Notes: generated by a model not told the origin, from the sequence alone. A DNA stretch of 64,000 bases from Macrostomum hystrix (GCA_950097015.1 CATNEN010000015.1:806001-870000), one strand, 5' to 3'; counted from the stretch's first letter, positions 9,403-57,344 are shown. Numbers and translations: made by a program.

Positions 9403-10152
9403 TCAGTTCTCCCGGATGCAGTAAGATTCCAGCCGTTGGAAATCCGACAGTTGGAGAATTATAGCGCTCATTCCATAGCAGTAGACTGAACCATTCAGGC
9501 TGTTCGCACTCGCTGAGGAGTACCCAATTCGCAGGCATTCAAACACAGACGAGTCCGCTTTAGCACCCAGGTCCATTGGGTAGGCCCTCTGAAACCGGCC
9601 ATAGAGGGTGCCGTTGAAGTAGTAGTGCTGGTAGGCGGTCCTGTTGTACGCGCAGCCGGCAGACAGCAGGGTTGGCTCCGTGGTTGCCGGCAAGAAGGTG
9701 TCTGATTCGGCCAGGTATTTGCCGTAGCCACCCTGAGTCCAGTGGGTGTAGCCGTACAGAAAATTGCTACGCTTGGCCAGCATGTTACCAGTCCTGTACG
9801 GGGAGCTGCAGGCCCTGAATACATGATAGAACTGGTACCTGAAATATGCGATTGCAGATTCTAGTTGCATTCCGCTGATCATAGAGTTCTAAAATGGTAT
9901 GAACTTACTCGCAATTCATTACGTGCCGCGCAAGCATATAGAATGAGTACACTTTTCCATAGTCCAAGTACTGCTGAAATCCAGGAGTCTCGGTACTCAG
10001 ATATGAGCTCGGACTTCCCTTGAGTACAGCGCCGTCGCTTCCCACAGATGCATCACTGGCAGTAAGGTAGTGCTGTCTCGGATTCACTTCGTTCACCAGG
10101 CCACTCTTCTTAAACCTGTAGAACAGCTTCATCTGCAGCTCAGTGAGCAGAT
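9403..10152 (-). CDS. LamG/concanavalin-A-like domain exons (10152-9909 and 9838-9403); probably exons 2-3 of a PAN-LamG secreted protein
   Basis: Acceptor ttttgtag before 10152 (phase 1). GTAAGT donor at 9908 and atttcag acceptor at 9839 give a 70-nt phase-2 intron joining ...RHVMNCE|YQFYHV.... Pattern LFYRF..SG.VNE...G.VLKGSPSSYL...YTHW...YYFNGTL...LRIG...NSLNGSV...LSDFQRL resembles Laminin_G_3/ConA-like domains. Confidence 0.7.
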
Positions 10153-10643
10153 CTACAAAAGGAGATTTAATTTTGTCTGCTGCAAGTTTATCGGTGCGCA
10201 GTAATTTCAGAAGCTTTTGTTAGCATATTCTACGCGTCAATAGCAGAGCCACTAGTGAGAGGCAACTCGTCTTCCCCTGTACCTCACTTCAAACCGCCTC
10301 TGCAACAGCAACAGCACTGATGAATGCGTCGGCTTCGCCAAAAGCACGCTTTGGTCAGAGTTTTTGCTGGACCATTGTGTGTTAGTAAGTTCGTTCCCCT
10401 ATAGTAGATAAAATTAATATGTGTGATGACTTCATATATCCCCAAATCAAAAGCAATTTTTCACCATGACATTGCACAAGACTCATTCTCTAACTCTCAG
10501 TGCTGCTTAAGTCTCTGATAAAGTGAGTTGTGTCCATAGATCTTATATATAGGTATAGGTTGCGTCACTCGTCCCGTAAGTAATTACGAGTAAGATCAAA
10601 GAACTTTACGTTTGCTAGGGTGTTATGTAACGACAACATACAA

Positions 10644-12301
10644 TCTCTCTCTAAATATACTAATTTTCACGTGTTGTTTGTCTGTCTGTGTGTGTGTGTG
10701 TGTGTCAGTTCGACATCTCCTACTAGAATACTGACAAGTCAACTTTGAAACTTATATGGGAAAATGGGAAATTTTCCGAGGAAGGCTATAGGCTATTTTA
10801 ATTCTGAAATTTCAAATTCTATGATCCTCAAAAAAGCAGAAAGGCTATTAAGTAGTATATAGTAGGCAAATGTCCTTCCCGCTGTGATGAAATTGGCCTC
10901 GGTTAAATGAGTTGCGTCAACATTTTGTGCCTATCTGTTTAGTGTATTTTCTCTCCAGTGGAGGGTTGGCAGTCGGTTTGAAAATGGGGCGGAGAGTTGG
11001 CCGTACGCACATTCTAACTGTCCCTGTGTATTGGCGGAGAGAGGGTGCCGCGAGTTATTTCTATTGAGGGGTCTGATTTGTTCAATATTGAAGTGCGTAC
11101 AATGGGCAGGGCAGAGTTGGCTGGGTTAAAATTCAATTGATAAAATTTGAATTGGGCCTCTCAGTGTAGGCGGAGAAGAATGTACTTACTAAAAAACTGG
11201 CTGCCCTTTGCGCTAAAGGCAATGAAATTTCAACTGTGAATTATTATTTTGCTTTTTAACATTTGAAAAGAACTGAGGCGATTTGAGATCAGGCAATGGG
11301 AGATCAGGCGATGGGAGATCAGGCAACGGGAGATGAGCCGATGGGAGATCAGGCGATGGGAGATCAGGCGATGGGAGATGTGGCGACGGGAGATGAGGCA
11401 ATGAGAAATGAGGCGATGGGAGATCAGGCGATAGGAGATGTGGCGACGGGAGATGAGGCGATGGGAGATCAGGCGATGGGAGATCAGGCGATAGGAGACG
11501 AGGCGATGGGAGATTAGGCGATGGGAGATCAGGCGATAGGAGATGAGGCGATAGGAGATGAGGCGATGGGAGATCAGGCGATGAGAGATTAGGCGATGGG
11601 AGATGAGGTGATGGGTGATCAGGTGATGGAAGATGAGGCGATGGGAGATGAGGCGATGGGAGATGAAGCGATGGGAGATGAGGCGATAGGAGATGAGGCG
11701 ATGGGAGATGAGGCGATGGGAGATCAGGCGATGGGAGATCAGGCGATGGGAGATCAGGCGATGGGAGATCAGGCGATGGGAGATGAGGCGATGGGAGATC
11801 AGGCGATGGGAGATCAGGCGATGGGAGATGTGGCGACGGGAGATGAGGCAATGAGAAATGAGGCGATGGGATCAGGCGATGGGAGATGAGGCGATGGGAG
11901 ATTAGGCGATGGGAGATCAGGCGATAGGAGATGAGGCGATGGGAGATGAGACGATGGGAGATGATGCGATGGGAGATCAGGCAATGGGAGATGAGGCGAT
12001 GGGAGATCAGGCGATGGGAGATCAGGCGATGGGAGATGAGGCAATGGGAGATGAGGCGATGGGAGATCAGGCAATAGGAGATGAGGCGATGGGAGATGAG
12101 ACGATGGGAGATGATGCGATGGGAGATTAGGCGATGGGAGATGAGGCGATGGGAGATAAGGCGATTGGAGATGAGGCGATGGGAGATGAGGCGATGGGAG
12201 ATCAGGCGATGGGAGATCAGGCGATAGGAGATGACGCGATGGGAGATCAGGCGATGGGAGTTCTCTCCCCTCAACCTCCTCCGGAGGAGGAGTTTAGCTC
12301 G
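10644..12301 (+). mobile_element. Non-autonomous Helitron-like family A, unit 1 (short form)
   Basis: Starts after A with TCTCTCTCTAAATATACTAA; (GTCT/GT)n microsatellite near the 5' end; ~630 bp unique body; 15-bp array ~11275-12260; palindrome CCTCCTCCGGAGGAGG at 12275-12290, then 7 nt and CTCG (12298-12301). Confidence 0.75.
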
Positions 12302-13864
12302 TAAATATACTAATTTTCACGTGTTGTTTGTCTGTGTGTGTGTCTGTGTGTGTGTGTGTCAGTTCGACATCTCCTCCTAGAATACTGGCAACTCAGCGTT
12401 GAAACTTATATGGGAAAATGGGAAATTTTCCGAGGAAGGCTATAGGCTATTTTAATTCTGAAATTTCAAATTCTATGATCCTCAAAAAAGCAGAAAGGCT
12501 ATTAAGTAGTATATAGTAGGCAAATGTCCTTCCCGCTGTGATGAAATTGGCCTCGGTTAAATGAGTTGCGTCAACATTTTGTGCCTATCTGTTCAGTGTA
12601 TTTTCTCTCCAGTGGAGGGTTGGCAGTCGGTTTGAAAATGGGGCGGAGAGTTGGCCGTACGCACATTCTAACTGTCCCTGTGTATTGGCGGAGAGAGGGT
12701 GCCGCGAGTTATTTCTATTGAGGGGTCTGATTTGTTCAATATTGAAGTGCGTACAATGGGCAGGGCAGAGTTGGCTGGGTTAAAATTCAATTGATAAAAT
12801 TATCGGGCCTCTCAGTGTAGGCGGAGAAGAATGTGCTTACTAAAAAACTGGCTGCCCTTTGCGCTAAAGGCAATGAAATTTCAACTGTGAATTATTATTT
12901 TGCTTTTTAACATTTGAAAAGAACTGAGGCGATTTGAGATCAGGCAATGGGAGATCAGGCAATGGGAGATCAGGCGATAGGAGATCAGGCGATAGGAGAT
13001 GAGGCGATAGGAGATCGGTCGATGGGAGATCAGGCGATGGGAGATCAGGCGACGGGAGATGAGCCGATGGGAGATGAGGCGATGGGAGATCAGGCGATGG
13101 GAAATCAGGCGATGGGAGATGAGGCGATGGGAGATCAGGCGATGGGAGATCAGGCGATGGGAGATGTGGCGATGGGAGATGAAGCGATGGGAGATGAAGC
13201 GATGGGAGATGAGGCGATGGGAGATCAGGCGATGGGAGATGAGGCGATGGGAGATTAGACGATGGGAGATGATGCGATGGGAGATTAGGCGATGGGAGAT
13301 GAGGTGATGGGTGATCAGGTGATGGGAGATGAGGCGATGGGAGATGAGGCGGTGGGAGATGAAGCGATGGGAGATGAGGCGATGGGAGATCAGGCGATGG
13401 GAGATGAGGCGATGGGAGATGAGGCGATGGGAGATGAGGCGATGGGAGATGAGGCGATGGGAGATTAGGCGATGGGAGATCAGGCGATGGGAGATGAGGC
13501 GATGGGAGATGAGGCGATGGGAGATCAGGCGATGGGAGATCAGGCGATAGGAGATGACGCGATGGGAGATCAGGCGATGGGAGATGATGCGATGGGAGAT
13601 TAGGCGATGGGAGATGAGGTGATGGGTGATCAGGTGATGGGAGATGAGGCGATGGGAGATGAGGCGATGGGAGATGAAGCGATGGGAGATGAGGCGATGG
13701 GAGATCAGGCGATGGGAGATGAGGCGATGGGAGATGAGGCGATGGGAGATGAAGCGATGGGAGATGAGGCGATGGGAGATGAGGCGATGGGAGATGAGGC
13801 GATGGGAGATGAGGCGATGGGAGTTCTCTCCCCTCAACCTCCTCCGGAGGAGGAGTTTAGCTCG
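12302..13864 (+). mobile_element. Helitron-like family A, unit 2 (short form)
   Basis: Same body as unit 1; starts TAAATATAC (no TC); 15-bp array ~12925-13823; same palindrome + CTCG end. Confidence 0.75.
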
Positions 13865-16507
13865 TAAATATACTAATTTTCACGTGTTGTTTGTCTGTGT
13901 GTGTGTCTGTGTGTGTGTGTGTGTGTCAGTTCGACATCTCCTCCTAGAATACTGGCAACTCAGCGTTGAAACTTATATGGGAAAATGGGAAATTTTCCGA
14001 GGAAGGCTATAGGCTATTTTAATTTTGAAATTTCAAATTCTATCATCCTCAAAAAAGCAGAAAGGCTATTAAGTAGTATATAGTAGGCAAATGTCCTTCC
14101 CGCTGTGATGAAATTGGCCTCGGTTAAATGAGTTGCGTCAACATTTTGTGCCTATCTGTTTAGTGTATTTTCTCTCCAGTGGAGGGTTGGCAGTCGGTTT
14201 GAAAAAAAATGGGGCGGAGAGGTGGCCGTACGCACATTCTAACTGCCTCTGTGTATTGGCGGAGAGAGGGTGCCGTTAGTCAGTTCTATTGAGGGGTCTG
14301 ATTTGTTCAATATTGAAGTGCGTACAATGGGCAGGGCAGAGTTGGCTGGGTTAAAATTCAATTTATAAAATTTGCGGGCCTCTCAGTGTAGGCGGAGAAG
14401 AATGTGCTTACTAAACTGGCTGCCTTTTGCAGAAATTTCAACTGAGAATTATTAATTTGCTTTTTTAAGATTTGTGGATAAAATTTGTACTGCTGGAGAG
14501 AACTTGAAGTTCTAAATCCAGAGATATAAATTTCATTGCTGAATTCCGAAAATTGGGGATGCCAAGGGCAAATAAAGTTTTTATACTTTTGCAATGCTTT
14601 CAGCTGAGTGTACAGTGTCTCGGCGAGATTGCTAAGGAGAGAGAATTCGCCACAATACAGTTTCACACATTCCTATTCTCGAAGGCGGACTGTTGAATTT
14701 TATTTATTGAAATTCGCACCTCTGACTGAGCGGGGCCCGGAGAACTCGCTGTTGTCAATATTAATGGCTCGGACTTCACCTGTTTTAACGGGTGGGGTTT
14801 AATTTAAAGTTGATGGAGTTCGCGCGATATGATTTCTAGCCCCTCAATCTTATCCGAAAGTTGTCGTCTATTTTAATTCTGAAGATTCTGGGCATGGTAG
14901 CTAAAGAAAAATTGGTCAATTTTGAATTGTTTTCAACAGTTTAGTCGGACAAAAGGCGGTTTACGCACATTGCTACTTTCAGACATCATTGGGTGAGGAG
15001 TTTTTGGTTAGATGAGGCGATGGGAGATGTGGCGACGGAAGATGAGGCAATGGGAGTTTAGGCGATGAGAGATGAGGCGATGGGAGATGAGGCGATGGGA
15101 GATGAGGCGATGGGAGATGAGGCGATGAGAGATGAGGCGATGAAAGATGACGCGATGGGAGATCAGGCGACGGGAGATGAGGGGATAGGAGATCAGGCGA
15201 TGGGAGATGAGGCGATGGGAGATCAGGCGACGGGAGATGAGGGGATGGGAGATCAGGCGATGGGAGATTAGGCGACGGGAGATGAGGGGATGGGAGATCA
15301 GGCGATGGGAGATCAGGCGATGGTAGATGAGGCGATGAAAGATGAGGCGATAGGAGATGAGGCGATGGGAGATTATGCGATGGGAGATGAGGCGATGGGA
15401 GATGAGGCGATGGGAGATGAGGCGATGGGAGATCAGGCGATGGGAGATGTGGCGACTGGAGATGAGGTGATGGGAGATCAGGCGATAGGAGATGACGCGA
15501 TGGGAGATGAGGCGATGGGAGATGAGACGATGGGAGATCAGGCAATGGGAGATCAGGCGATGGGAGATTAGGCGATGGGAGATTAGGCGATGGGAGATGA
15601 GGCGATGGGAGATCAGGCGATTGGAGATCAGGCGATTGGAGATGAGGCGATGGGAGATCAGCCGATGGGAGATCAGCCGATGGGACATTAGGCGATGGGA
15701 GATCAGGCAATGGGAGATCAGGCGGGGGAAGATCAGGCGATGGGAGATCAGGCGATGGGAGATCAGGCGATGGGAGATCGGGCGATGGGAGATGAGGCGA
15801 TGGGAGATCAGGCGATGGGAGATGAGGGGATGGGAGATCAGGCGATAGGAGATGAGGCGATGGGAGATGAGGTGATGGGAGATGAGACGGTGGGAGATCA
15901 GGCGGGGGAAGATCAGGCGATGGGAGATCAGGCGATGGGAGATGAGGCGATGGGAGATTAGGCGATGGGAGATCAGGCGATAGGAGATGAGGCGATGGGA
16001 GATGAGACGATGGGAGATGATGCGATGGGAGATTAGGCGATGGGAGATGAGGTGATGGGTGATCAGGTGATGGGAGATGAGGCGATGGGAGATGAGGCGA
16101 TGGGAGATGAAGCGATGGGAGATGAGGCGATGGGAGATCAGGCGATGGGAGATCAGGCGATGGGAGATCAGGCGATGGGAGATGAGGGGATGGGAGATCA
16201 GGCGACGGGAGATGAGGCGATGGGAGATGAGGCGATGGGAGATGAGGCGATGGGAGATGAGGCGATGGGAGATGAGGCGATGGGAGATGAGGCGATGGGA
16301 GATTAGGCGATGGGAGATCAGGCGATGGGAGATTAGGCGATGGGAGATGAGGCGATGGGAGATGAGGCGATGGGAGATGAGGCGATGGGAGATGAGGCGA
16401 TGGGAGATTAGGCGATGGGAGATCAGGCGATAGGAGATGACGCGATGGGAGATCAGGCGATGGGAGTTCTCTCCTCTCAACCTCCTCCGGAGGAGGAGTT
16501 TAGCTCG
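13865..16507 (+). mobile_element. Helitron-like family A, unit 3 (long form)
   Basis: Same termini; extra ~580-bp block ~14428-15009; 15-bp array ~15010-16466. Confidence 0.75.
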
Positions 16508-17897
16508 TAAATATACTAATTTTCACGTGTTGTTTGTCTGTCTGTGTGTGTGTGTGTCAGTTCGACATCTCCTCCTAGAATACTGGCAACTCAGCGTTGA
16601 AACTTATATGGGAAAATGGGAAATTTTCCGAGGAAGGCTATAGGCTATTTTAATTCTGAAATTTCAAATTCTATGATCCTCAAAAAAGCAGAAAGGCTAT
16701 TAAGTAGTATATAGTAGGCAAATGTCCTTCCCGCTTAGACGAAATTGGCTTTGGTTAAATGAGTTGCGTCAACATTTTCTGCCTATCTGTTCAGTGTATT
16801 TTCTCTCCAGTGGAGGGTTGGCAGTCGGTTTGAAAATGGGGCGGAGAGGAGGCCGTACGCACATTCTAACTGTCCCTGTGTATTGGCGGAGAGAGGGTGC
16901 CGCGAGTTATTTCTATTGAGGGGTCTGATTTGTTCAATATTGAAGTGCGTACAATGGGCAGGGCAGAGTTGGCTGGGTTAAAATTCAATTGATAAAATTT
17001 GCGGGCCTCTCAGTGTAGGCGGAGAAGAATGTACTTACTAAAAAACTGGCTGCCCTTTGCGCTAAAGGCAATGAAATTTCAACTGTGAATTATTATTTTG
17101 CTTTTTAACATTTGAAAAGAACTGAGGCGATTTGAGATCAGGCAATGGGAGATCAGGCAATGGGAGATCAGGCGATGGGAGATCAGGCGATCGGAGATGA
17201 GGCGATGGGAGATCAGGCGATGGGAGATCAGGCGATGGGAGATCAGGCAACGGGAGATGAGCCGATGGGAGATCAGGCGATGGGAGATCAGGCGATGGGA
17301 GATCAGGCGATGGGAGATGAGGCGATGGGAGATCAGGCGATGGGAGATCAGGCGATGGGAGATGAGGCAATGGGAGATGAGGCGACGGGAGATGAGGCGA
17401 TGGGAGATCAGGCGATGGGAGATGAGGCGATGGGAGATGAGGCGATGGGAGATGAGGGGATGGGAGATCAGGCGATGGGAGATGAGGCGATGGAAGATGA
17501 GGCGATGGGAGATGAGGGGATGGGAGATGAGGCGATGGGAGATGTGGCGACGGGAGATGAGGCAATGGGAGATGAGGCGATGGGAGATGCGGTGATCGGT
17601 GATCAGGTGATGGGAGATGAGGCGATGGGAGATGAGGCGATGGGAGATGAGGCGATGGGAGATCAGGCGATGGGAGATGAGGCGATGGGAGATGAGGCGA
17701 TGGGAGATGAGGCGATGGAAGATGAGGCGATGGGAGATCAGGCGATGGAAGATCAGGCGATAGGAGATGAGGCGATGGGAGATGAGGCGATGGGAGATGA
17801 GACGGTGGGAGATCAGGCGGGGGAAGATCAGGCGATTGGAGATCAGGCGATCGGAGTTCTCTCCCCTCAACCTCCTCCGGAGGAGGAGTTTAGCTCG
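16508..17897 (+). mobile_element. Helitron-like family A, unit 4 (short form)
   Basis: Same termini and body; 15-bp array ~17123-17856. Confidence 0.75.
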
Positions 17898-20135
17898 TAA
17901 ATATACTAATTTTCACGTGTTGTTTGTCTGTCTGTGTGTGTGTGTGTCAGTTCGACATCTCCTCCTAGAATACTGGCAACTCAGCGTTGAAACTTATATG
18001 GGAAAATGGGAAATTTTCCGAGGAAGGCTATAGGCTATTTTAATTCTGAAATTTCAAATTCTATGATCCTCAAAAAAGCAGAAAGGCTATTAAGTAGTAT
18101 ATAGTAGGCAAATGTCCTTCCCGCTGTGATGAAATTGGCCTCGGTTAAATGAGTTGCGTCAACATTTTGTGCCTATCTGTTCAGTGTATTTTCTCTCCAG
18201 TGGAGGGTTGGCAGTCGGTTTGAAAATGGGGCGGAGAGGAGGCCGTACGCACATTCTAACTGCCTCTGTGTATTGGCGGAGAGAGGGTGCCGTTAGTCAG
18301 TTCTATTGAGGGGTCTGATTTGTTCAATATTGAAGTGCGTTTAATGGGCAGGGCAGAGTTGGCTGGGTTGAAAATAAATTTTAAAATTTGCGGGCCTCTC
18401 AGTGTAGGCGGAGAAGAATGTGCTTACTAAACTGGCTGCCCTTTGCGCTAAAGGCAATGAAATTTCAACTGTGAATTATTATTTTGCTTTTTAACATTTG
18501 AAAAGAACTTAGGCGATTTGAGATCAGGCAATGCGAGATCAGGCAATGGGAGATCAGGCGATGGGAGATCAGGCAATGGGAGATCAGCCGATGGGAGATT
18601 AGGCGATGGGAGATGAGGCGATGGGAGATCAGCCGATGGGAGATCAGCCGATGGGAGATTAGGCGATGGGAGATGAGGCGATGGGAGATCAGGCAATGGG
18701 AGATCAGGCGATGGGAGATTAGGCGATGGGAGATTAGGCGATGGGAGATGAGGCGATTGGAGATGAGGCGATGGGAGATGAGGCGATGGGAGATTAGGCG
18801 ATGGGAGATCAGGCGATGGGAGATCAGGCAATGGGAGATCAGGCGATGGGAGATTAGGCGATGGGAGATTAGGCGATGGGAGATCAGGCGATGGGAGATG
18901 AGGCGATGGGAGATTAGGCGATGGGAGATGAGGCGATGGGAGATGAGGCGATGGGAGATGAGGCGATGGGAGATGAGGCGATGGGAGATTAGGCGATGGG
19001 AGATCAGGCGATGGGAGATCAGGCAATGGGAGATCAGGCGATGGGAGATTAGGCGATGGGAGATTAGGCGATGGGAGATGAGGCGATGGGAGATTAGGCG
19101 ATGGGAGATGAGGCGATGGGAGATGAGGCGATGGGAGATGAGGCGATGGGAGATGAGGCGATGGGAGATTAGGCGATGGGAGATCAGGCGATGGGAGATC
19201 AGGCAATGGGAGATCAGGCGATGGGAGATTAGGCGATGGGAGATTAGGCGATGGGAGATGAGGCGATGGGAGATTAGGCGATGGGAGATCAGGCGATTGG
19301 AGATGAGGCGATGGGAGATCAGCCGATGGGAGATCAGCCGATGGGAGATTAGGTGATGGGAGATGAGGCGATGGGAGATCAGGCAATGGGAGATCAGGCG
19401 ATGGGAGATGAGGCGATGGGAAATCAGGCGATGGCGATGGGAGATGTGGCGATGGGAGATGTGGCGATGTGAGATTAGGCGATGGGAGATTAGGCGATGG
19501 GAGATGAGGCGATGGGAGATTAGGCGATGGGAGATGAGGCGATGGGAGATGAGGCGATGGGAGATGAGGCGATGGGAAATCAGGCGATGGCGATGGGAGA
19601 TGAGGCGATGGGAGATGAGACGATGGGAGATGATGCGATGGGAGATGAGGCGATGGGAGATGAGGCGATGGGAGATGAGGCGATGGGAGATCAGGCGGGG
19701 GAAGATCAGGCGATAGGAGATGAGGCGATGGGAGATGAGGCGATGGGAGATCAGGCGACGGGAGATGAGGCGATGGGAGATCAGGCGATGGGAGATGAGG
19801 CGATGGGAGATCAGGCGATGGGAGATTAGGCGATGGGAGATGAGGCGATGGGAGATGAGGCAATGGGAGATGAGGCGATGGGAGATGAGGCGATGGGAGA
19901 TCAGGCGATGGGAGATGTGGCGACGGGAGATGAGGCAATGGGATATTAGGCGATGGGAGATCAGGTAATGGGAGATCTGGCGATGGGAGATCAGGCGATA
20001 GGAGATGAGGCGATGGGAGATGAGGCGATGGGAGATGAGACGGTGGGAGATCAGGCGGGGGAAGATCAGGCGATTGGAGATCAGGCGATGGCAGTTCTCT
20101 CCCCTTAACCTCCTCCGGAGGAGGAGTTTAGCTCG
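17898..20135 (+). mobile_element. Helitron-like family A, unit 5 (short form)
   Basis: Same termini and body; 15-bp array ~18510-20094. Confidence 0.75.
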
Positions 20136-20160
20136 TCTAAATATACTAAAATTCACGTGT

Positions 20161-20195
<35 letters not shown>

Positions 20196-22590
20196 TGGTT
20201 ATCTCCTCCTAGAATACTGACAAGTCAACTTTGAAACTTATATGGGAAAATGGGAAATTTTCCTGGTCAGGCTATAGGCTATTTTAATTCTGAAATTTCG
20301 AATTCTATGATCCTCAAAAAAGCAGAAAGGCTATTAAGTAGTATATAGTAGGCAAATGTCCTTCCCGCTGTGATGAAATTGGCCTCGGTTAAATGAGTTG
20401 CGTCAACATTTTGTGCCTATCTGTTTAGTGTATTTTCTCTCCAGTGGAGGGTTGGCAGTCGGTTTGAAAATGGGGCAGAGAGGAGGCCGTACGCACATTC
20501 TAACTGTCCCTGTGTATTGGCGGAGAGAGGGTGCCGTTAGTCAGTTCTATTGAGGGGTCTGATTTGTTCAATATTGAAGTGCGTACAATGGGCAGGGCAG
20601 AGTTGGCTGGGTTAAAATTCAATTGATAAAATTGCGGGCCTCTCAGTGTAGGCGGAGAAGAATGTGCTTACTAAACTGGCTGCCTTTTGCAGAAATTTCA
20701 ACTGAGAATTATTATTTTGCTTTTTTAAGATTTGTGGATAAAATTTGTACTGCTGGAGAGAACTTGAAGTTCTAAATCCAGAGATATAAATTTCATTGCT
20801 GAATTCCGAAAATTGGGGATGCCAAGGGCAAATAAAGTTTTTATACTTTTGCAATGCTTTCAGCTGAGTGTACAGTGTCTCCGCTAGATTGCTAAGGAGA
20901 GAGAATTCGCCACAATACAGTTTCACACATTCCTATTCTCGAAGGCGGGCTGTTGAATTTTATTTATTGAAATTCGCACCTCTGACTGAGCGGGGCCCGG
21001 AGAACTGGCTGTCGTCAATATTAATGGCTCGGACTTCATCTGTTTTAACGGGTGGGGTTTAATTTAAAGTTGATGGAGTTCGCGCGATATGATTTCTAGC
21101 CCCTCAATCTTATCCGAAAGTTGTCGTCTATTTTAATTCTGAAGATTCTGGGCATGGTAGCTAAAGAAAAATTGGTCAATTTTGAATTGTTTTCAACAGT
21201 TTAGTCGGACAAAAGGCGGTTTACAAACATTGCTACTTCCAGACATCATTGGGTGAGGAGTTTTTGGTTAGTCAGTTTGGACACTGAGGTCTGAACTCTC
21301 TGAATTGAATATAAAATGACTGTACATTCACGCAAGATCGCACGGGGTGATGAGGCGATGGGAGATCAGGCAATGGGAGATCAGGCGATGGGAGATTAGG
21401 CGATGGGAGATCAGGCGATGGGAGATGAGGGGATGGGAGTTTAGGCGATGGGAGATGAGGCGATGGGAGATGAGGCGATGGGAGATGAGGCGATAGGAGA
21501 TGAGGCGATAGGAGATGAGGCGATGGGAGATGTGGCGACGGGAGATGAGGCGATGGGAGATGAGGCGATGGGAGATGAGGCGATAGGAGATGAGGCGATT
21601 GTAGATGTGGCGACGGAAAATGAGGCAATGGGAGTTTAGGCGATGGGAGATGTGACGACGGGAGATGAGGTGATGGGTGATCAGGTGAAGGGAGATGAGG
21701 CGATGGGAGATGAGGCGATGGGAGATGAGGCGACGGGAGATGAGGGGATGGGAGATCAGGCGATGGGAGATGAGGCGACGGGAGATGAGGGGATGGGAGA
21801 TCAGGCGATGGGAGATGAGGCAATGGAAGATGAGGCGATGGGAGATGAGGGGATGGGAGATGAGGCGATGGGAGATGAGGCGATGGGAGATGAGGCGATG
21901 GGAGATGAGGGGATGGGAGATCAGGCGATGGGAGATGAGGCGATGGGAGATGAGGCGATGGGAGATGAGGGGATGGGAGATGAGGCGATGGGAGATGAGG
22001 CGATGGGAGATGAGGCGATGGGAGATGAGGTGATGGGAGATGAGGCGACGGGAGATGAGGGGATGGGTGATCAGGCGATGGGAGATGAGGCGATGGAAGA
22101 TGAGGCAATGGAAGATGAGGCGATGGGAGATGAGGGGATGGGAGATGAGGCGATGGGAGATGAGGCGATGGGAGATGAGGCGATGGGAGATGAGGGGATG
22201 GGAGATCAGGCGATGGGAGATGAGGCGATGGGAGATGAGGCGATGGGAGATCAGGCGATGGGAGATCAGGCGATAGGAGATGAGGCGATGGGAGATGAGG
22301 CGATGGGAGATGTGGCGACGGGAGATGAGGCAATGGGAGATCAGGCGATAGGAGATCAGGCGATGGGAGATGAGGCGATTGGAGATGAGACGGTGGGAGA
22401 TGAGGCGATGGGAGATGTGGCGACGGGAGATGAGGCAATGGGAGATCAGGCGATAGGAGATCAGGCGATGGGAGATGAGGCGATTGGAGATGAGACGGTG
22501 GGAGATCAGGCGGGGGAAGATCAGGCGATTGGAGATCAGGCGATGGGAGTTCTCTCCCCTCAACCTCCTCCGGAGGAGGAGTTTAGCTCG
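20136..22590 (+). mobile_element. Helitron-like family A, unit 6 (long form; intact TC 5' end)
   Basis: Junction reads CTCG|TCTAAATATAC; extra block ~20687-21343; 15-bp array ~21344-22549; palindrome + CTCG end. Confidence 0.75.
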
Positions 22591-22613
22591 TAAATATACT
22601 AAAATTCACGTGT

Positions 22614-22648
<35 letters not shown>

Positions 22649-24662
22649 TGGTTATCTCCTCCTAGAATACTGACAAGTCAACTTTGAAACTTATATGGGA
22701 AAATGGGAAATTTTCCTGGTCAGGCTATAGGCTATTTTAATTCTGAAATTTCAAATTCTATGATCCTCAAAAAAGCAGAAAGGCTATTAAGTAGTATATA
22801 GTAGGCTAATGTCCTTCCCGCTGTGATGAAATTGGCCTCGGTTAAATGAGTTGCGTCAACATTTTGTGCCTATCTGTTTAGTGTATTTTCTCTCCAGTGG
22901 AGGGTTGGCAGTCGGTTTTAAAATGGGGCGGAGAGTTGGCCGTACGCACATTCTAACTGCCCCTGTGTATTGGCGGAGAGAGGGTGCCGCGAGTTATTGC
23001 CGCTATTGAGGGGTCTGATTTGTTCAATATTGAAGTGCGTATAATGGGCAGGGCAGAGTTGGCTGGGTTAAAATTCAATTGATAAAATTTGCGGGCCTCT
23101 CTGTGTAGGCGGAGAAGAATGTACTTACTAAAAAACTGGCTGCCCTTTGCGCTAAAGGCAATGAAATTTCAACTGTGAATTATTATTTTGCTTTTTAACA
23201 TTTGAAAAGAACTGAGGCGATTTGAGATCAGGCAATGGGAGATCAGGCAATGGGAGATCAGGCGATGGGAGATCAGGCGATGGGAGATGTGGCGACGGGA
23301 GATGAGGCAATGAGAAATGAGGCGATGGGAGATCAGGCGATGGGAGATCAGGCGACGGGAGATGAGCCGATGGGAGATCAGGCGATGGGAGATCAGGCGA
23401 TGGGAGATCAGGCGATGGGAGATGAGGCGATGGGAGATCAGGCGATGGGAGATCAGGCGATGGGAGATGTGGCGACGGGAGATGAGGCAATGAGAAATGA
23501 GGCGATGGGAGATCAGGCGATTGGAGATGTGGCGACGGGAGATGAGGCGATGGGAGATCAGGCGATGGGAGATGTGGCGACGGGAGATGAGGCAATGAGA
23601 AATGAGGCGATGGGAGATCAGGCGATAGGAGATGTGGCGACGGGAGATGAGGCGATGGGAGATCAGGCGATGGGAGATGAGGCGATGGGAGATGAGGCGA
23701 TGGGAGATTAGGCGATGGGAGATGAGGCGATAGGAGATGAGGCGATGGGAGATGAGACGATGGGAGATGATGCGATGGGAGATTAGGCGACGGGAGATGA
23801 GGCAATGGGAGATTAGGCGATGGGAGATCAGGCAATGGGAGATCTGGCGATGGGAGATCAGGCAATGGGAGATCTGGCGATGGGAGATCAGGCGATAGGA
23901 GATGAGGCGATGGGAGATGAGGCGATGGGAGATGAGACGGTGTGAGATCAGGCGGGGGAAGATCAGGCGACGGGAGATGAGGCGATGGGAGATGAGGCGA
24001 TGGGAGATCAGGCGATGGGAGATGAGGCGATGGGAGATGAGGCGATGGGAGATGAGGCGATGGGAGATGAGGCGATGGGAGATTAGGCGATGGGAGATCA
24101 GGCGATAGGAGATGACGCGATGGGAGATCAGGCGATGGGAGATCAGGCGATAGGAGATGACGCGATGGGAGATCAGGCGATGGGAGATCAGGCGATGGTA
24201 GATGAGGCGATGAAAGATGAGGCGATGGGAGATCAGGCGATAGGAGATGAGGGGATGGGAGATCAGGCGATGGGAGATCAGGCGATGGGAGATCAGGTGA
24301 TGGGAGATCAGGCGATGGGAGATCAGGCGACGGGAGATGAGGGGATGGGAGATCAGGCGATGGGAGATCAGGTGATGGGAGATCAGGCGATGGGAGATGT
24401 GGCGACGGGAGATGAGGTGATGGGTGATCAGGTGAAGGGAGATGAGGCGATGGGAGATGAGGCGATGGGAGATTAGGCGATGGGAGATGAGGCAATAGGA
24501 GATGAGGCGATGGGACATCAGGCGATAGGAGATGAGGCGATGGGAGATGAGGCGATGGGAGATGAGACGGTGGGAGATCAGGCGGGGGAAGATCAGGCGA
24601 TTGGAGATCAGGCGATGGGAGTTTTCTCCCCTCAACCTCCTCCGGAGGAGGAGTTTAGCTCG
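22591..24662 (+). mobile_element. Helitron-like family A, unit 7 (short form)
   Basis: Starts TAAATATAC; 15-bp array ~23213-24621; palindrome at 24636-24651; CTCG at 24659-24662. Confidence 0.75.
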
Positions 24663-24722
24663 TAATATACTAAAAATGAAAATCTTTCTAATATACTAAA
24701 AATGAAAATCTTGCTTGTCTTA
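24663..24722 (+). repeat. Two truncated tandem copies of the family-B Helitron 5' terminus
   Basis: 24663-24686 TAATATACTAAAAATGAAAATCTT (TC missing) and 24687-24722 TCTAATATACTAAAAATGAAAATCTTGCTTGTCTTA precede the full-length 5' end at 24723. Confidence 0.8.
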
Positions 24723-25318
24723 TCTAATATACTAAAAATGAAAATCTTGCTTGCTTGTTCGTAATTGATTTTCTCCCGAACGGCTCAACCGATTTTCACC
24801 ATTTCTTCACCAAAAGATGCCAAATATGGGGACAATTATACACGTATTTTTATTAAGCTTAACTTTATTGCTAAAGGGATTAAATATTCGAAAAACAAGA
24901 TTTTTCAAAGGTCAAACATCTTGGCCTATTGAGAATTTTACTCACTGCCACTGAATTAGAATTGCATCGTCAAATTGCGCAACAACCCCTAGCTGATTGA
25001 ATTTGAAGCCTGCACTCTGGAGACAAATTGGAAATAAATGTACACAACCAACCGCGAGACTGAGTGTACTCTATTTTCTTACTTCATTGTACAAAGCCAG
25101 AACTTTGAGAATTCATTTTATAAGGCTGATTTTTGCACCCACTAACCAACAGTCGGAATAGCCGATGTGTAGGCACTAGGAATAAGGTTAGGCTAGGCTA
25201 GGGTTCGATTCTGCACTGCGTCAAATCATTTAGACTAATTTTCAGCCAGTAGTGATTGAAGACTATTTTAATTTATTTTTTTCATTTCGTAAATAAAATA
25301 TCATAAATCATAGCACAC

Positions 25319-28300
25319 CGGCTAAAACAGAGTTTGAATCATGGCTAAACCAGAGTCTGAATCATGGCTAAACCAGAGTCTGAATCATGGCTAAACCAGA
25401 GTCTGAATCATGGCTAAACCAGAGTCTGAATCATGGCTAAACCAGAGTCTGAATCATGGCTAAACCAGAGTCTGAATCATGGCTAAACCAGAGTCTGAAT
25501 CATGGCTAAACCAGAGTCTGGATCATGGCTAAACCAGCGTCTGAATCATGGCTAAACCAGAGTCTGAATCAAGGCTAAACCAGAGTCTGAATCATGGCTA
25601 CACCAGAGTCTGAATCATGGCTACACCAGAGTCTGAATCATGGCTACACCAGAGTCTGAATCATGGCTACACCAGAGTCTGAATCATGGCTAAACCAGAG
25701 TTTGAATCATAGCTAAACCAGAGTCTGAATCATGGCTAAACCAGAGTCTGAATCATTGCTACACCAGAGTCTGAATCATGGCTCATAGCTAAACCAGAGT
25801 CTGAATCATGGCTAAACCAGAGTCTGAATCATGGCTACACCAGAGTCTGAATCATGGCTAAACCAGAGTTTAAATCAAAGCTAAACAAGCGTCTGAATCA
25901 TGGCAAAACCAGAGTTTGAATCATAGCTAAACCAGAGTCTGAATCATGGCTAAACCAGAGTCTGAATCATGGCTAAACCAGAGTCTGAATCATGGCTAAA
26001 CCAGAGTCTGAATCATGGCTAAACCAGAGTCTGAATCATGGCTAAACCAGAGTCTGAATCATGGCTACACCAGAGTCTGAATCATGGCTAAACCAAAGTC
26101 TGAATCATTGCTACACCAGAGTCTGAATCATGGCTCATAGCTAAACCAGAGTCTGAATCATGGCTAAACCAGAGTCTGAATCATGGCTACACCAGAGTCT
26201 GAATCATGGCTAAACCAGAGTTTGAATCATAGCTAAACCAGAGTCTGAATCATGGCTAAACCAGAGTCTGAATCATTGCTACACCAGAGTCTGAATCATG
26301 GCTCATAGCTAAACCAGAGTCTGAATCATGGCTAAACCAGAGTCTGAATCATGGCTACACCAGAGTCTGAATCATGGCTAAACCAGAGTTTAAATCAAAG
26401 CTAAACAAGCGTCTGAATCATGGCAAAACCAGAGTTTCAATCATGGCTAAACCAGAGACTAAATCATGGCTACACCAGGGTTTGAATCATGGCAAAACCA
26501 GAGTTTTAATCATGGCTAAACAAGAGTTTGAATGATGGCTAAACCAGAGTTTGAATCATGGCTAAACAAGCGTCTGAATCATGGCTAAACCAGAGTCTGA
26601 ATCATGGCTAAACCAGAGTTTGAATCATAGCTAAACCAGAGTCTGAATCATGGCTAAACCAGAGTCTGAATCATGGCTAAACCAGAGTCTGAATCATGGC
26701 TAAACCAGAGTCTGAATCATGGCTAAACCAGAGTCTGAATCATGGCTAAACCAGAGTCTGAATCATGGCTAAACCAGAGTCTGAATCATGGCTACACCAG
26801 AGTCTGAATCATGGCTAAACCAAAGTCTGAATCATTGCTACACCAGAGTCTGAATCATGGCTCATAGCTAAACCAGAGTCTGAATCATGGCTAAACCAGA
26901 GTCTGAATCATGGCTACACCAGAGTCTGAATCATGGCTAAACCAGAGTTTAAATCAAAGCTAAACAAGCGTCTGAATCATGGCAAAACCAGAGTTTCAAT
27001 CATGGCTAAACCAGAGACTAAATCATGGCTACACCAGGGTTTGAATCATGGCAAAACCAGAGTTTGAATCATGGCTAAACCAGAGTCTGAATCATGGGTA
27101 AACCAGAGTCTGAATCATGGCTAAACCAGAGTCTGAATCATGGCTAAACCAGAGTCTGAATCATGGCTAAACCAGAGTCTGAATCATGGCTAAACCAGAG
27201 TCTGAATCATGGCTAAACCAGAGTCTGAATCATGGCTAAACCAGAGTCTGAATCATGGCTAAACCAGAGTCTGGATCATGGCTAAACCAGCGTCTGAATC
27301 ATGGCTAAACCAGAGTCTGAATCAAGGCTAAACCAGAGTCTGAATCATGGCTAAACCAGAGTCTGAATCATGGCTACACCAGAGTCTGAATCATGGCTAC
27401 ACCAGAGTCTGAATCATGGCTACACCAGAGTCTGAATCATGGCTAAACCAGAGTTTGAATCATAGCTAAACCAGAGTCTGAATCATGGCTAAACCAGAGT
27501 CTGAATCATTGCTACACCAGAGTCTGAATCATGGCTCATAGCTAAACCAGAGTCTGAATCATGGCTAAACCAGAGTCTGAATCATGGCTACACCAGAGTC
27601 TGAATCATGGCTAAACCAGAGTTTAAATCAAAGCTAAACAAGCGTCTGAATCATGGCAAAACCAGAGTTTGAATCATAGCTAAACCAGAGTCTGAATCAT
27701 GGCTAAACCAGAGTCTGAATCATGGCTAAACCAGAGTCTGAATCATGGCTAAACCAGAGTCTGAATCATGGCTAAACCAGAGTCTGAATCATGGCTAAAC
27801 CAGAGTCTGAATCATGGCTACACCAGAGTCTGAATCATGGCTAAACCAAAGTCTGAATCATTGCTACACCAGAGTCTGAATCATGGCTCATAGCTAAACC
27901 AGAGTCTGAATCATGGCTAAAACAGAGTCTGAATCATGGCTACACCAGAGTCTGAATCATGGCTAAACCAGAGTTTGAATCATAGCTAAACCAGAGTCTG
28001 AATCATGGCTAAACCAGAGTCTGAATCATTGCTACACCAGAGTCTGAATCATGGCTCATAGCTAAACCAGAGTCTGAATCATGGCTAAACCAGAGTCTGA
28101 ATCATGGCTACACCAGAGTCTGAATCATGGCTAAACCAGAGTTTAAATCAAAGCTAAACAAGCGTCTGAATCATGGCAAAACCAGAGTTTCAATCATGGC
28201 TAAACCAGAGACTAAATCATGGCTACACCAGGGTTTGAATCATGGCAAAACCAGAGTTTGAATCATGGCTAAACCAGAGTCTGAATCATGGCTAAACCAG

Positions 28301-52300: not shown

Positions 52301-55300
52301 CTGAATCATGGCTAAACCAGAGTCTGAATCATGGCTAAACCAAAGTCTGAATCATTGCTACACCAGAGTCTGAATCATGGCTCATAGCTAAACCAGAGTC
52401 TGAATCATGGCTAAACCAGAGTCTGAATCATGGCTACACCAGAGTCTGAATCATGGCTAAACCAGAGTTTAAATCAAAGCTAAACAAGCGTCTGAATCAT
52501 GGCAAAACCAGAGTTTCAATCATGGCTAAACCAGAGACTAAATCATGGCTACACCAGGGTTTGAATCATGGCAAAACCAGAGTTTTAATCATGGCTAAAC
52601 AAGAGTTTGAATGATGGCTAAACCAGAGTTTGAATCATGGCTAAACAAGCGTCTGAATCATGGCTAAACCAGAGTCTGAATCATGGCTAAACCAGAGTTT
52701 GAATCATAGCTAAACCAGAGTCTGAATCATGGCTAAACCAGAGTCTGAATCATGGCTAAACCAGAGTCTGAATCATGGCTAAACCAGAGTCTGAATCATG
52801 GCTAAACCAGAGTCTGAATCATGGCTAAACCAGAGTCTGAATCATGGCTAAACCAGAGTCTGAATCATGGCTACACCAGAGTCTGAATCATGGCTAAACC
52901 AAAGTCTGAATCATTGCTACACCAGAGTCTGAATCATGGCTCATAGCTAAACCAGAGTCTGAATCATGGCTAAACCAGAGTCTGAATCATGGCTACACCA
53001 GAGTCTGAATCATGGCTAAACCAGAGTTTAAATCAAAGCTAAACAAGCGTCTGAATCATGGCAAAACCAGAGTTTCAATCATGGCTAAACCAGAGACTAA
53101 ATCATGGCTACACCAGGGTTTGAATCATGGCAAAACCAGAGTTTGAATCATGGCTAAACAAGAGTTTGAATCATGGCTAAACCAGAGTTTGAATCATGGC
53201 TAAACAAGCGTCTGAATCATGGCTAAACCAGAGTCTGAATCATGGCTAAACCAGAGTCTGAATCATGGCTCAACCAGAGTCTGGATCATGGCTAAACCAG
53301 AGTCTGAATCATGGCTAAACCAGAGTCTGAATCATGGCTAAACCAGAGTCTGAATCATGGCTAAACCAGAGTCTGAATCATGGCTAAACCAGAGTCTGAA
53401 TCATGGCTAAACCAGAGTCTGGATCATGGCTAAACCAGAGTCTGAATCATGGCTAAACCAGAGTCTGAATTATGGCTAAACCAGAGTCTGAATCATTGCT
53501 AAACCAGAGTCTGAATCATGGCTACACCAGAGTCTGAATCATGGCTACACCAGAGTCTGAATCATGGCTAAACCAAAGTCTGAATCATTGCTACACCAGA
53601 GTCTGAATCATGGCTCATAGCTAAACCAGAGTCTGAATCATGGCTAAACCAGAGTCTGAATCATGGCTACACCAGAGTCTGAATCATGGCTAAACCAGAG
53701 TTTGAATCATAGCTAAACCAGAGTCTGAATCATGGCTAAACCAGAGTCTGAATCATTGCTACACCAGAGTCTGAATCATGGCTCATAGCTAAACCAGAGT
53801 CTGAATCATGGCTAAACCAGAGTCTGAATCATGGCTACACCAGAGTCTGAATCATGGCTAAACCAGAGTTTAAATCAAAGCTAAACAAGCGTCTGAATCA
53901 TGGCAAAACCAGAGTTTGAATCATAGCTAAACCAGAGTCTGAATCATGGCTAAACCAGAGTCTGAATCATGGCTAAACCAGAGTCTGAATCATGGCTAAA
54001 CCAGAGTCTGAATCATGGCTAAACCAGAGTCTGAATCATGGCTACACCAGAGTCTGAATCATGGCTACACCAGAGTCTGAATCATGGCTAAACCAAAGTC
54101 TGAATCATGGCTCATAGCTAAACCAGAGTCTGAATCATGGCTAAACCAGAGTCTGAATCATGGCTACACCAGAGTCTGAATCATGGCTAAACCAGAGTTT
54201 AAATCAAAGCTAAACAAGCGTCTGAATCATGGCAAAACCAGAGTTTCAATCATGGCTAAACCAGAGACTAAATCATGGCTACACCAGGGTTTGAATCATG
54301 GCAAAACCAGAGTTTTAATCATGGCTAAACAAGAGTTTGAATGATGGCTAAACCAGAGTTTGAATCATGGCTAAACAAGCGTCTGAATCATGGCTAAACC
54401 AGAGTCTGAATCATGGCTAAACCAGAGTTTGAATCATAGCTAAACCAGAGTCTGAATCATGGCTAAACCAGAGTCTGAATCATGGCTAAACCAGAGTCTG
54501 AATCATGGCTAAACCAGAGTCTGAATCATGGCTAAACCAGAGTCTGAATCATGGCTAAACCAGAGTCTGAATCATGGCTACACCAGAGTCTGAATCATGG
54601 CTAAACCAAAGTCTGAATCATTGCTACACCAGAGTCTGAATCATGGCTCATAGCTAAACCAGAGTCTGAATCATGGCTAAACCAGAGTCTGAATCATGGC
54701 TACACCAGAGTCTGAATCATGGCTAAACCAGAGTTTAAATCAAAGCTAAACAAGCGTCTGAATCATGGCAAAACCAGAGTTTCAATCATGGCTAAACCAG
54801 AGACTAAATCATGGCTACACCAGGGTTTGAATCATGGCAAAACCAGAGTTTGAATCATGGCTAAACAAGAGTTTGAATCATGGCTAAACCAGAGTTTGAA
54901 TCATGGCTAAACAAGCGTCTGAATCATGGCTAAACCAGAGTCTGAATCATGGCTAAACCAGAGTCTGAATCATGGCTAAACCAGAGTCTGGATCATGGCT
55001 AAACCAGAGTCTGAATCATGGCTAAACCAGAGTCTGAATCATGGCTAAACCAGAGTCTGAATCATGGCTAAACCAGAGTCTGAATCATGGCTAAACCAGA
55101 GTCTGAATCATGGCTAAACCAGAGTCTGGATCATGGCTAAACCAGAGTCTGAATCATGGCTAAACCAGAGTCTGAATTATGGCTAAACCAGAGTCTGAAT
55201 CATGGCTAAACCAGAGTCTGAATCATGGCTACACCAGAGTCTGAATCATGGCTACACCAGAGTCTGAATCATGGCTACACCAGAGTCTGAATCATGGCTA

Positions 55301-56075
55301 CACCAGAGTCTGAATCATGGCTAAACCAGAGTTTGAATCATAGCTAAACCAGAGTCTGAATCATGACTAAACCAGAGTCTGAATCATTGCTACACCAGAG
55401 TCTGAATCATGGCTCATAGCTAAACCAGAGTCTGAATCATGGCTAAACCAGAGTCTGAATCATGGCTACACCAGAGTCTGAATCATGGCTAAACCAGAGG
55501 TTAAATCAAAGCTAAACAAGCGTCTGAATCATGGCAAAACCAGAGTTTGAATCATAGCTAAACCAGAGTCTGAATCATGGCTAAACCAGAGTCTGAATCA
55601 TGGCTAAACCAGAGTCTGAATCATGGCTAAACCAGAGTCTGAATCATGGCTAAACCAGAGTCTGAATCATGGCTAAACCAGAGTCTGAATCATGGCTACA
55701 CCAGAGTCTGAATCATGGCTAAACCAAAGTCTGAATCATTGCTACACCAGAGTCTGAATCATGGCTCATAGCTAAACCAGAGTCTGAATCATGGCTAAAC
55801 CAGAGTCTGAATCATGGCTACACCAGAGTCTGAATCATGGCTAAACCAGAGTTTAAATCAAAGCTAAACAAGCGTCTGAATCATGGCAAAACCAGAGTTT
55901 CAATCATGGCTAAACCAGAGACTAAATCATGGCTACACCAGGGTTTGAATCATGGCAAAACCAGAGTTTGAATCATGGCTAAACCAGCGTTTGAATCATG
56001 GCCAACCAGCGTCTGAATCATGGCTAAACCAGAGTTTGAATCATGGCAAAATCAGAGTTTGAATCATAGCTAAAT
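25319..56075 (+). repeat. 23-bp satellite array (~30.7 kb, roughly 1,300 monomers), consensus CATGGCTAAACCAGAGTCTGAAT, with higher-order repeats
   Basis: 23-bp periodicity (e.g. TGAATC at 25381 and 25404); recurrent variant monomers in fixed order; a 30-bp variant (GGCT-CATAGCT-AAACC); degenerate monomers at both edges. Confidence 0.98.
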
Positions 56076-56078
56076 CGG

Positions 56079-56875
56079 AACTGGGGGATAATCGTCAACT
56101 GTGGGATAATTGTAAACTGGGGAATCATCATCAAATGGGGGATCATGGTCAACTGGGGATCATTGTCAAATGGGGATCATCATCATTTGGGAGTCATCAT
56201 CAAAGGGGGGATCATGGTCAACTGCGAGATCATTGTCAACTGGGTGATCATCATCAACTGGGGGATCATTGTCAACTAGGGGGATCATTGTCAACTGGGG
56301 TATCATTATCAACTGGGGGATCATCATCAACTGGGTGATCATTGTCAACTGGGGGATCATTGTCATCTGAGGGATCATTGTCAACTGGGGGATCATTGTC
56401 AACTGTGAGATCATTGTCAACTGGGTGATCATTGTCAACTGGGGGATCATTGTCAACTGGGGGATCATTGTCAACTGTGGGATCATTGTCAACTGTGAGA
56501 TCATTGTCAACTGGGGGATCATTGTCAACTGGGGGATCATTGTCAACTGGGTGATCATTGTCAACTGGGGGATCATCATCAACTGGGGGATCATTGTCAA
56601 CTGTGGGATCATTGTCAACTGGGGGATCATTGTCAACAAGGGGATCATTGTCAACTGGGGGATCATTGTCAACTGGGGATCATTGTCAACTGGGGGTTCA
56701 TTGTCAACTGGGGGATCATTGTCAACTGGGGGATCATCATCAACTGGGGGATCATTGTCAACTGGGGATCATTGTCAACTGGGGGTTCATTTTCAACTGG
56801 GGGATCATTGTCAACTGGGGGATCATCATCAACTGGGGGATCATTGTCAACTGGGGGATCATTGTCAACTGGGGG
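56079..56875 (+). repeat. 18-bp minisatellite, consensus CTGGGGGATCATTGTCAA (some 17-bp variants)
   Basis: Periodicity read directly; gives the WGIIVN / QLTMIP / GGSLST repeat ORFs. Confidence 0.95.
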
Positions 56876-56947
56876 TTTATTTTAGCTTTAAAAAGCTGTA
56901 AATTCAGCTGCTAAACAGTATATACAAGACGAATTAAAAATATTTCT

Positions 56948-56976
56948 GCTCCCCGAAGGGGGGCAAAACATGCTAG
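56948..56976 (+). other. Helitron 3' terminal signature: hairpin + CTAG
   Basis: GCTCCCC GAA GGGGGGC stem-loop (one T-G pair), spacer AAAACATG, CTAG, followed by T. Matches the canonical Helitron 3' end (hairpin about 10 nt upstream of CTRR). Confidence 0.75.
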
Positions 56977-56987
56977 TATATACTAAA

Positions 56988-57344
56988 TTACATACTGCTG
57001 TCTGAAAGACCCAATCGAGTGTACACGAAAGCCACACAAGGTCCGTCAGTCCATTGCGTTGCCGCTGAACGAGCGTCTCCTAGGTAGCACAATCGTTTGA
57101 CAATGTCCATGTAGAAAGCATTGCAGCTAGGTATGGCGCTGCACACTCCAGCGCATTGCAGCAGGCTGCTTCTCTGATACTGCTTAGTGTTGGCTGTTGG
57201 ACACTGCTGAGACCTACGGAAATTGTGCATCTCTGCTGCTACCGTACACGAGCTCTCTGTAATTACGGCGGCTGGCCATACCAAGAGAACCCAGTACTTC
57301 AGTGCCGTTCCGACTTTTGAGTTCAACTGGGTAGGCATTCTCAT
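56988..57344 (-). CDS. Signal-peptide-like + PAN/apple domain exon; probably exon 1 (57344-56996) of the PAN-LamG gene, or a stand-alone 118-aa protein
   Basis: Hydrophobic N-terminal stretch (ALKYWVLLVWPAAVI); PAN-type cysteine motif SSLLQCAGVCSAIPSCNAFYMDIVKRLCYL; phase-1 GTATGT donor at 56995, just before the in-frame TAA at 56990-56988. Confidence 0.72.
   Translation of the reverse strand: MRMPTQLNSKVGTALKYWVLLVWPAAVITESSCTVAAEMHNFRRSQQCPTANTKQYQRSSLLQCAGVCSAIPSCNAFYMDIVKRLCYLGDARSAATQWTDGPCVAFVYTRLGLSDSSM

Follow-up and report, generated by a model that had tools for sequence, protein, structure and literature searches.

The window analysed here is a 64,000-nucleotide (nt) stretch of the Macrostomum hystrix genome (GCA_950097015.1, CATNEN010000015.1:806001-870000), whose minus strand carries the three exons of one gene: an exon near 57 kb encoding a signal-like segment and a PAN/apple-like domain, and two exons near 10 kb encoding a domain labelled laminin G-like (LamG), separated from the first by an intron that consists almost entirely of Helitron-like elements and the tandem arrays inside them (Table 1). 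Joined by script, the exons meet in phase (349+244+436 = 1029 nt) to give an open 342-amino-acid (aa) protein, with AAT (N) as the codon formed at the exon 1/exon 2 junction; GT/AG is intact at all four splice signals, and there is neither stop nor frameshift in any exon. Reading the minus strand reproduced every exon coordinate, splice phase and the 342-aa frame of the initial annotation, which was made from the sequence alone. Its further claim of an in-frame TAA 6 nt into the intron also holds, the stop lying at 56988-56990 where the frame reads S-M-stop, so that retention of intron 1 would yield a PAN-only product of 118 aa. An alternative first exon nearer to exon 2 was considered and rejected, as tblastn with homologous proteins detected no other PAN-like coding piece anywhere in the window. 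The 491-nt single-copy segment upstream of exon 2 holds only short ATG-initiated pieces that run into stops; a 22-nt piece in it, ATG...G followed by GTGAAA and ending in phase 1, was weighed as a first exon and is regarded as chance.

A HMMER scan with exon 3 against 1.84 billion representatives returned five relatives, and publicly the family is known from Macrostomum lignano alone. The best relative, P0001 (UPI0007A367C3), matches all three exons collinearly along residues 441-745 (58-59% over exon 3, 69% over exon 2 and 37-41% over the PAN part). In P0001, as in P0002 (A0A1I8GWZ0, 377 aa) and P0003 (A0A1I8FMH4, 292 aa), which UniProt names 'Apple domain-containing' proteins, a PAN domain lies upstream of the same C-terminal domain on one chain; all three are from M. 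lignano. When M. lignano homologues served as tblastn queries, the window matched only at 57350-57018, 10150-9908 and 9840-9418, in order and on one strand, with exon 1 matched by P0001, P0002, P0003, P0007 and P0008, and in the alignments the three window pieces tile the homologue chain with no gap and no overlap. Because these matches are ordered, confined to the exons and to a single strand, and because the pieces tile the chain, the match to three exons is not chance.

The gene structure of M. lignano was read at one locus, that of a paralogue on contig NIVC01004936.1, exact look-ups of P0001, P0002 and P0003 having returned no contig. Its PAN exon is 328 nt long and ends in phase 1 at a GTAAGT donor, its exon 2 starts at most 3 codons from the start of exon 2 in the window, and its intron 2 lies in phase 2 at the same position as in the window, between x and Y of the motif xY(N/Q)FYH. 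Intron 1 of the paralogue measures ~330-348 nt, as against 510 nt for the window intron minus its insert. A search for a paralogue with a short first intron was among the checks suggested in the initial annotation, and its outcome is favourable: such a paralogue (~0.33-0.35 kb) is found with the same intron positions and phases. Together with the architecture of the homologues, these positions and phases bear out the proposal that the PAN exon and the two exons near 10 kb belong to one gene, and the model of a single three-exon gene is sound.

Exon 1 scores below the Pfam thresholds (PAN_4 21.2 bits against a cut-off of 27, PAN_1 14.8 against 21.4; PF00024, PF14295), and the PAN domains of the homologues also fall just under threshold, at 18-21 bits. 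No Pfam family, LamG, Laminin_G_3 and pentraxin included, matched exon 2, exon 3 or the C-terminal parts of P0002 and P0003; language-model features point to Laminin_G_3 clusters. An AlphaFold2 (AF2) model of the homologue P0003 (predicted local distance difference test, pLDDT, 69.8; predicted template modelling score, pTM, 0.67) is all-beta over residues 77-273 and forms a beta-sandwich, which Foldseek matched to the lectin-like subdomain of the clostridial neurotoxin binding domain (probability 1.0, E ~1e-8, template modelling (TM) score 0.5-0.56), and further to trans-sialidase lectin domains and to the TSPN/LamG domains of NELL1 and collagens V and XI, all at 9-16% identity. As modelled in this homologue, the C-terminal domain is a concanavalin A (ConA)-like jelly roll at the level of fold only, with no toxin function implied. 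The 'LamG' label of the initial annotation stands in this sense of fold, and it does not stand as a Pfam assignment. A shell matrix protein fragment from Mytilus californianus (P86860, 294 aa) aligns nearly full length with the same model (TM score 0.48), and the two may share a two-domain layout of PAN and beta-sandwich. The encoded product is probably a secreted-type protein with a signal-like segment, a PAN/apple-like domain and a ConA/LamG-like beta-sandwich.

Relative to P0001, 12 of 14 cysteine positions are kept. At the other two, where all four M. lignano homologues have a cysteine, it has been lost, once on each side of the giant intron: GD[AS]C reads GDAR in exon 1 (~57068), and [FY]CL reads HYL in exon 2 (within RQHYL, ~10080). 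The PAN domain retains six aligned cysteines, and the seventh, found in all M. lignano homologues, is Arg in the window. It may be that this paired loss removed one (interdomain) disulfide from a single polypeptide. The protein and the PAN-LamG parts of P0001, P0002 and P0003 share domain order, intron positions and phases, and differ in the ~0.35-kb first intron of the M. lignano paralogue and in the two cysteines that the window protein has lost.

The insert at 10644-56976 is 46,333 nt long, or 98.9% of intron 1, and all of its elements are oriented along the plus strand and are thus antisense to the gene, in agreement with the claim of a ~99% Helitron/satellite intron opposed to its host. 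It is composed of two kinds of element. The seven A-type units each begin with a 5' ATATACTAA, followed by a ~620-nt head, a 15-bp array that is rich in G and varies in length, a hairpin formed by a 16-nt palindrome, and an end of the form AGTTTAGCTCG; their heads are 90.6-98.3% identical, and at the 3' end the 16-nt palindrome is followed by 11 nt and then CTCG, not CTRR. TC precedes ATATACTAA only in the first unit (10644, TCTCTCTCTAAATATAC) and in the unit at 20141, the others starting TAA-ATATACTAA; the ATATACTAA motif occurs 12 times in the window against 0.31 expected. The B-type element, which carries the 30.7-kb satellite, has a 3' end that fits the usual description of a Helitron, namely a CTRR end with a short GC-rich hairpin 10-15 nt ahead of it. 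Arrays called by Tandem Repeats Finder (TRF) cover 42,461 of the 46,843 nt of intron 1 (90.6%), and those of the insert show 72-88% matches; a find_repeats-type repeat search and blastn on the arrays returned the 15-bp periodicity and nothing further. Because 91% of the intron is tandem array inside elements, array growth has contributed more of the added length than element stacking. The idea that stacked elements inflated an ordinary intron is on this point correct as to the Helitron-like fill and wrong as to where most of the length came from.

Three DNA runs of one study (X1-X3) were available for comparison; X1 is probably the source sample, and X2 and X3 have thin coverage with holes over the exons. 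In X1 a contig spans 9000-10669 and another 56958-58400, each with 0 differences and each crossing a junction between single-copy and element sequence, and the two flanks show single-copy depth (85 and 74). The insert, in contrast to its flanks, belongs to dispersed multi-copy families, with summed contig depth in X1 from thousands to ~200,000 against 74-85 in the flanks. The A-type units reach thousands to ~40,000 against 85 in the flank, the B-type 3' tail reaches ~1,700-2,800 times the unique depth, and many different sequences follow its CTAG end among the X1 contigs; the families are regarded as dispersed and high-copy because the summed depth is so far above the flanks and the sequences after the CTAG end are varied. 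The insert sits between an A (10643) and a T (56977), here called an A-T site; its flanks are not repeated and a target-site duplication (TSD) is absent. The T at 56977 runs into an element-like stub, so the true host edge is uncertain. No open reading frame (ORF) for a Rep/helicase was found within the window. The hairpin, CTAG end, A-T site, lack of TSD and copy number all fit non-autonomous Helitrons as judged by sequence, and the CTCG end and mostly TA, not TC, 5' ends of the A-type units are not canonical for Helitrons.

The edge of the insert beside the exon 1 donor departs from the initial annotation, in which 19 native nt separated insert and donor. Positions 56978-56992 match the A-type 5' end at 13 of 15 bases, and the B-type 5' end agrees with the first ten of these as well; of the donor, GTA alone lies outside this stub. 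About half of the X1 sequences that follow the same 3' end start with the same motif. The insertion point is probably 3-4 nt from the exon, with the part of the donor context beyond GTA probably derived from an element; the stub may have arisen by self-targeting of 5'-end-like sites or by read-through from a donor array. Other Helitron 5' ends without a body stand in the window besides 56978-56992: two copies, of 26 nt and 36 nt, lie ahead of the B-type element (24665-24740), and one on the minus strand at 2059-2067 agrees with the A-type end in 15 of 16 positions. Capture of the PAN exon by a Helitron, with the 5' stub at 56977 reading rightwards, was also entertained and rejected, the stretch 56958-58400 being single-copy in X1 and syntenic with M. 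lignano.

Beyond the gene, a 225-aa neighbour (5199-5876, minus strand) is 75% identical to M. lignano BOX15_Mlig030314g1, whose locus matches 1-3808, 5284-5876 and 9033-9098 of the window in order. The P0001 model has its C-terminal part at this M. lignano locus too, and residues 300-411 of P0001 match 63194-62865, upstream of the PAN exon and on its strand. These matches assign the two sides of the giant intron to a single M. lignano neighbourhood, which is a strong argument against a false join.

Table 1. Features of the three-exon gene and of the insert in its first intron, in window coordinates
Feature	Position	Strand	Remarks
Exon 1: start codon, signal-like segment, PAN/apple-like domain	57344-56996	minus	ATG at 57344; 349 nt = 116 codons + 1 nt, phase 1
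Exon 1 splice donor GTATGT	56990-56995	minus	sequence reading
Intron 1, 46,843 nt	10153-56995	minus	sequence reading
Intron 1 single-copy remainder, 491 nt, with acceptor ttttgtag	10153-10643	minus	sequence reading; X1 contig
Exon 2: start of ConA/LamG-like domain, 244 nt	10152-9909	minus	ttttgtag before, GTAAGT after
Intron 2: 70 nt, GTAAGT...CAG, phase 2	9839-9908	minus	position same as in M. lignano paralogue
Exon 3: rest of ConA/LamG-like domain, 436 nt	9838-9403	minus	TGA at 9403-9405
Seven A-type Helitron-like units, head to tail, 1.4-2.6 kb each	10644-24664	plus	
B-type Helitron-like element	24665-56976	plus	includes two short 5' stubs at 24665 and 24691
B-type head, ~590 nt	24727-25319	plus	
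B-type 23-bp satellite, 30.7 kb, ~1315 copies, 88% matches	25320-56074	plus	TRF
B-type 18-bp array	56079-56875	plus	TRF
B-type 3' tail, ~100 nt	ends at 56976	plus	hairpin 56948-56964, then 12 nt, CTAG end at 56976
AATAAA on the gene's strand, inside the element 3' tail	56876-56881	minus	115 nt past exon 1 donor
T + 15-nt stub like Helitron 5' end, between insert 3' end and donor	56977-56992	plus	

We propose that this three-exon gene once had an ordinary first intron, ~0.35-0.5 kb long, and that non-autonomous Helitron-like elements, antisense to the gene, would have entered a host A-T site a few nt downstream of the donor. Seven units arranged head to tail, plus another element, would have accumulated at the site, and their internal 15-, 23- and 18-bp arrays would then have grown in place to give the 46.8-kb intron. 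Some transcripts would probably be lost to premature polyadenylation at the AATAAA, or to retention with its 118-aa PAN-only product. Exon structure, exon conservation, the make-up of the insert and both junctions are observed directly in the DNA; we infer that the gene is probably still transcribed through the array and that, at some level, splicing joins 56996 to 10152. The insert is not entirely recent, as its unit heads differ by 1.7-9.4% and its arrays match at only 72-88%, and the intact 1-kb coding sequence favours function because a unit divergence of this size, if it arose in place, should have brought indels or stops.

Several points weigh against this interpretation. The age of the insertion is uncertain, since the units may have diverged before arrival, and intact frames are only moderate evidence of function. 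A poly(A) signal stands on the gene's own strand just past the donor, making a truncated PAN-only transcript plausible, and read in the sense of the gene the 18-bp array offers 23 CCCCCAG acceptor-like sites; from exon 1 at least the first three of these are in frame, adding (DNDPPV)n and giving products of at most 182 aa. The 118-aa retention product has no record by exact sequence look-up. Mean introns in Macrostomum genomes measure 0.56-1.1 kb (PMC10468722), so that an intron of 46.8 kb is ~40-80 times the mean. The PAN exon lacks orthologue signal, with 37% identity to P0001 and 46% to the paralogue P0002, unlike exons 2 and 3, which do show such a signal with P0001. Finally, the contig checks cover the junctions and flanks, and the interior of the 30.7-kb satellite is beyond the reach of short contigs.

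The most serious alternative to continued splicing, though in our judgement an unlikely one, is that the gene was recently disabled: the insertions would have stopped productive splicing, leaving at most a truncated PAN-only transcript, by retention or through the element's antisense AATAAA, and LamG-like exons that are silent and as yet undecayed. Such an account would draw on the AATAAA 115 nt past the donor and the TAA 6 nt into the intron, on a donor context that is element-like past GTA, on the many acceptor-like sites in the 18-bp array, and on a PAN exon that has lost a conserved cysteine and is unusually diverged from P0001. It is less easily squared with three open exons, four intact splice signals and the retention of the other 12 cysteines; if the 1.7-9.4% divergence among units accumulated in place, frameshifts or stops ought to be seen in a coding sequence of 1 kb that was dead, and the two cysteine losses, paired across the intron, look more like a compensated change than decay.

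It is improbable that the locus holds two transcription units, one encoding a PAN-only secreted protein and the other a LamG-only message beginning at 10152, either by spliced-leader (SL) trans-splicing or from a promoter in the 491-nt segment. Although 10-30% of Macrostomum genes are SL trans-spliced (PMC10468722), an SL ending in ATG, as described in the same work, would when joined at 10152 run into a stop 8 codons on. Within 10153-10643 there are a TATA-like motif and short pieces that start with ATG, and exon 2 has an in-frame Met at MKLFYRF; the LamG-only product, however, would lack a signal peptide despite being Cys-rich with N-x-T sites, PAN is fused upstream in every homologue, and the acceptor is in phase 1, the phase of the PAN donor, just as in the M. 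lignano paralogue. Hardly more credible, and if anything a shade less so, is an assembly artefact in which the many copies of Helitron and satellite sequence led to a wrong join of the flanks or to an inflated array length, perhaps with two PAN-LamG paralogues mixed together. Parts of the elements exist in hundreds to thousands of copies, and short contigs do not reach into the array interior, yet the parts of the gene on the two flanks complement each other, with order, strand and phase all as expected, a single M. lignano region is syntenic with the two flanks, and error-free contigs cross both junctions with similar single-copy depth on either side; the 23-bp array was also searched for a large internal duplication, which would have pointed to mis-assembly, and none was found. 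If, as we favour, a single gene is still spliced across the insert, a bolder combination may be entertained, namely that it is productively spliced over a 47-kb, 91%-satellite intron and that the Helitron family in addition prefers A-T sites resembling its own 5' end (ATATACTAA). We hold this joint claim to be doubtful; such a preference, if true, would explain both the head-to-tail stacks and the 5' stub in the donor context.

The surroundings of the gene can be compared with the M. lignano locus of BOX15_Mlig030314g1. In M. lignano, an ankyrin/ion-transport gene (14-6474 of that locus) separates the orthologue of the 225-aa gene from the PAN-LamG part of P0001, and in the window only ~300 nt (9098-9403) lie between the LamG stop and the next syntenic block, which points to gene gain or loss, or rearrangement, between the species at 9098-9403. 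A WSC domain is present in P0001 as well. Upstream of the PAN exon, 62865-63277 and 63772-63990 are GC-rich and open on both strands; the minus strand of this GC-rich stretch is 46% identical to residues 312-411 of P0001 and contains a stop, the plus strand holds WD40-looking ORFs, and that part of the merged P0001 model may be an antisense artefact. A 21-bp tandem array at 61834-62769 (~45 copies, 90% matches) has on its minus strand a 316-aa ORF of VVSDYPS-type heptads. Positions 58625-58863 match 15811-16055 of the M. lignano locus (a 246-nt stretch, 86% identical) out of synteny and inside the span of another gene, and are probably a repeat common to both species. At the other end of the window, 1-3826 (plus strand) is occupied by a gene of several exons, the last part of which encodes an EGF-like Cys-rich segment and a transmembrane segment; a 1174-aa M. 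lignano gene is its syntenic counterpart. Its product is without a Pfam family, as is the 225-aa protein, a four-helix membrane protein.

Introns filled with satellite are known from the Drosophila Y-linked fertility genes kl-3 and kl-5, where they are gigantic (PMC6508621). The likeness lies in an intron of a coding gene that consists almost wholly of tandem satellite and across which transcription must pass for the exons to be joined; the difference is that the kl-3 and kl-5 introns run to megabases, whereas the flatworm intron is 47 kb, its transcription is putative, its gene is autosomal as far as can be told, and its satellites lie inside Helitron-like elements. Non-autonomous Helitron/Helentron elements with tandem repeats have been described as Cg_HINE in Crassostrea gigas and DINE-1 in Drosophila (PMC7492417). 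Like these, the flatworm elements are short rolling-circle elements with a central array of variable length, no TSD and high copy number, of a kind that can seed satellites, but Cg_HINE and DINE-1 have Helentron ends with T-rich or TT sites, and the flatworm elements are classic Helitron-like, with an A-T site and a 3' hairpin plus CTAG; they differ further in the single 30.7-kb array, the head-to-tail units and the extra 5' stubs. Intronic Helitron insertions in maize, such as sh2-7527, are reportedly known as mutant alleles with disturbed transcripts, and share with the present locus a large Helitron inside an intron of a host gene. A repeat-inflated intron is a known kind of event, and the locus is a flatworm example of it, not a new mechanism; it is notable for the scale of the intron relative to the normal introns of its genome.

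For annotation the locus serves as a warning, as gene-finding programs will probably report a stub with PAN only and, separately, an orphan LamG fragment. Should the gene be dead, it would be an ordinary transposon knock-out. If the junction is still made, it would be a compact natural test of a spliceosome used to ~0.5-kb introns and here facing 47 kb of satellite, the more so for the premature poly(A) signal and dozens of decoy acceptors beside the donor, and a gene still spliced would provide a small-scale, non-Drosophila case of intron gigantism. The locus is also a dated-looking example of Helitron-borne arrays growing to a 30-kb satellite within a gene.

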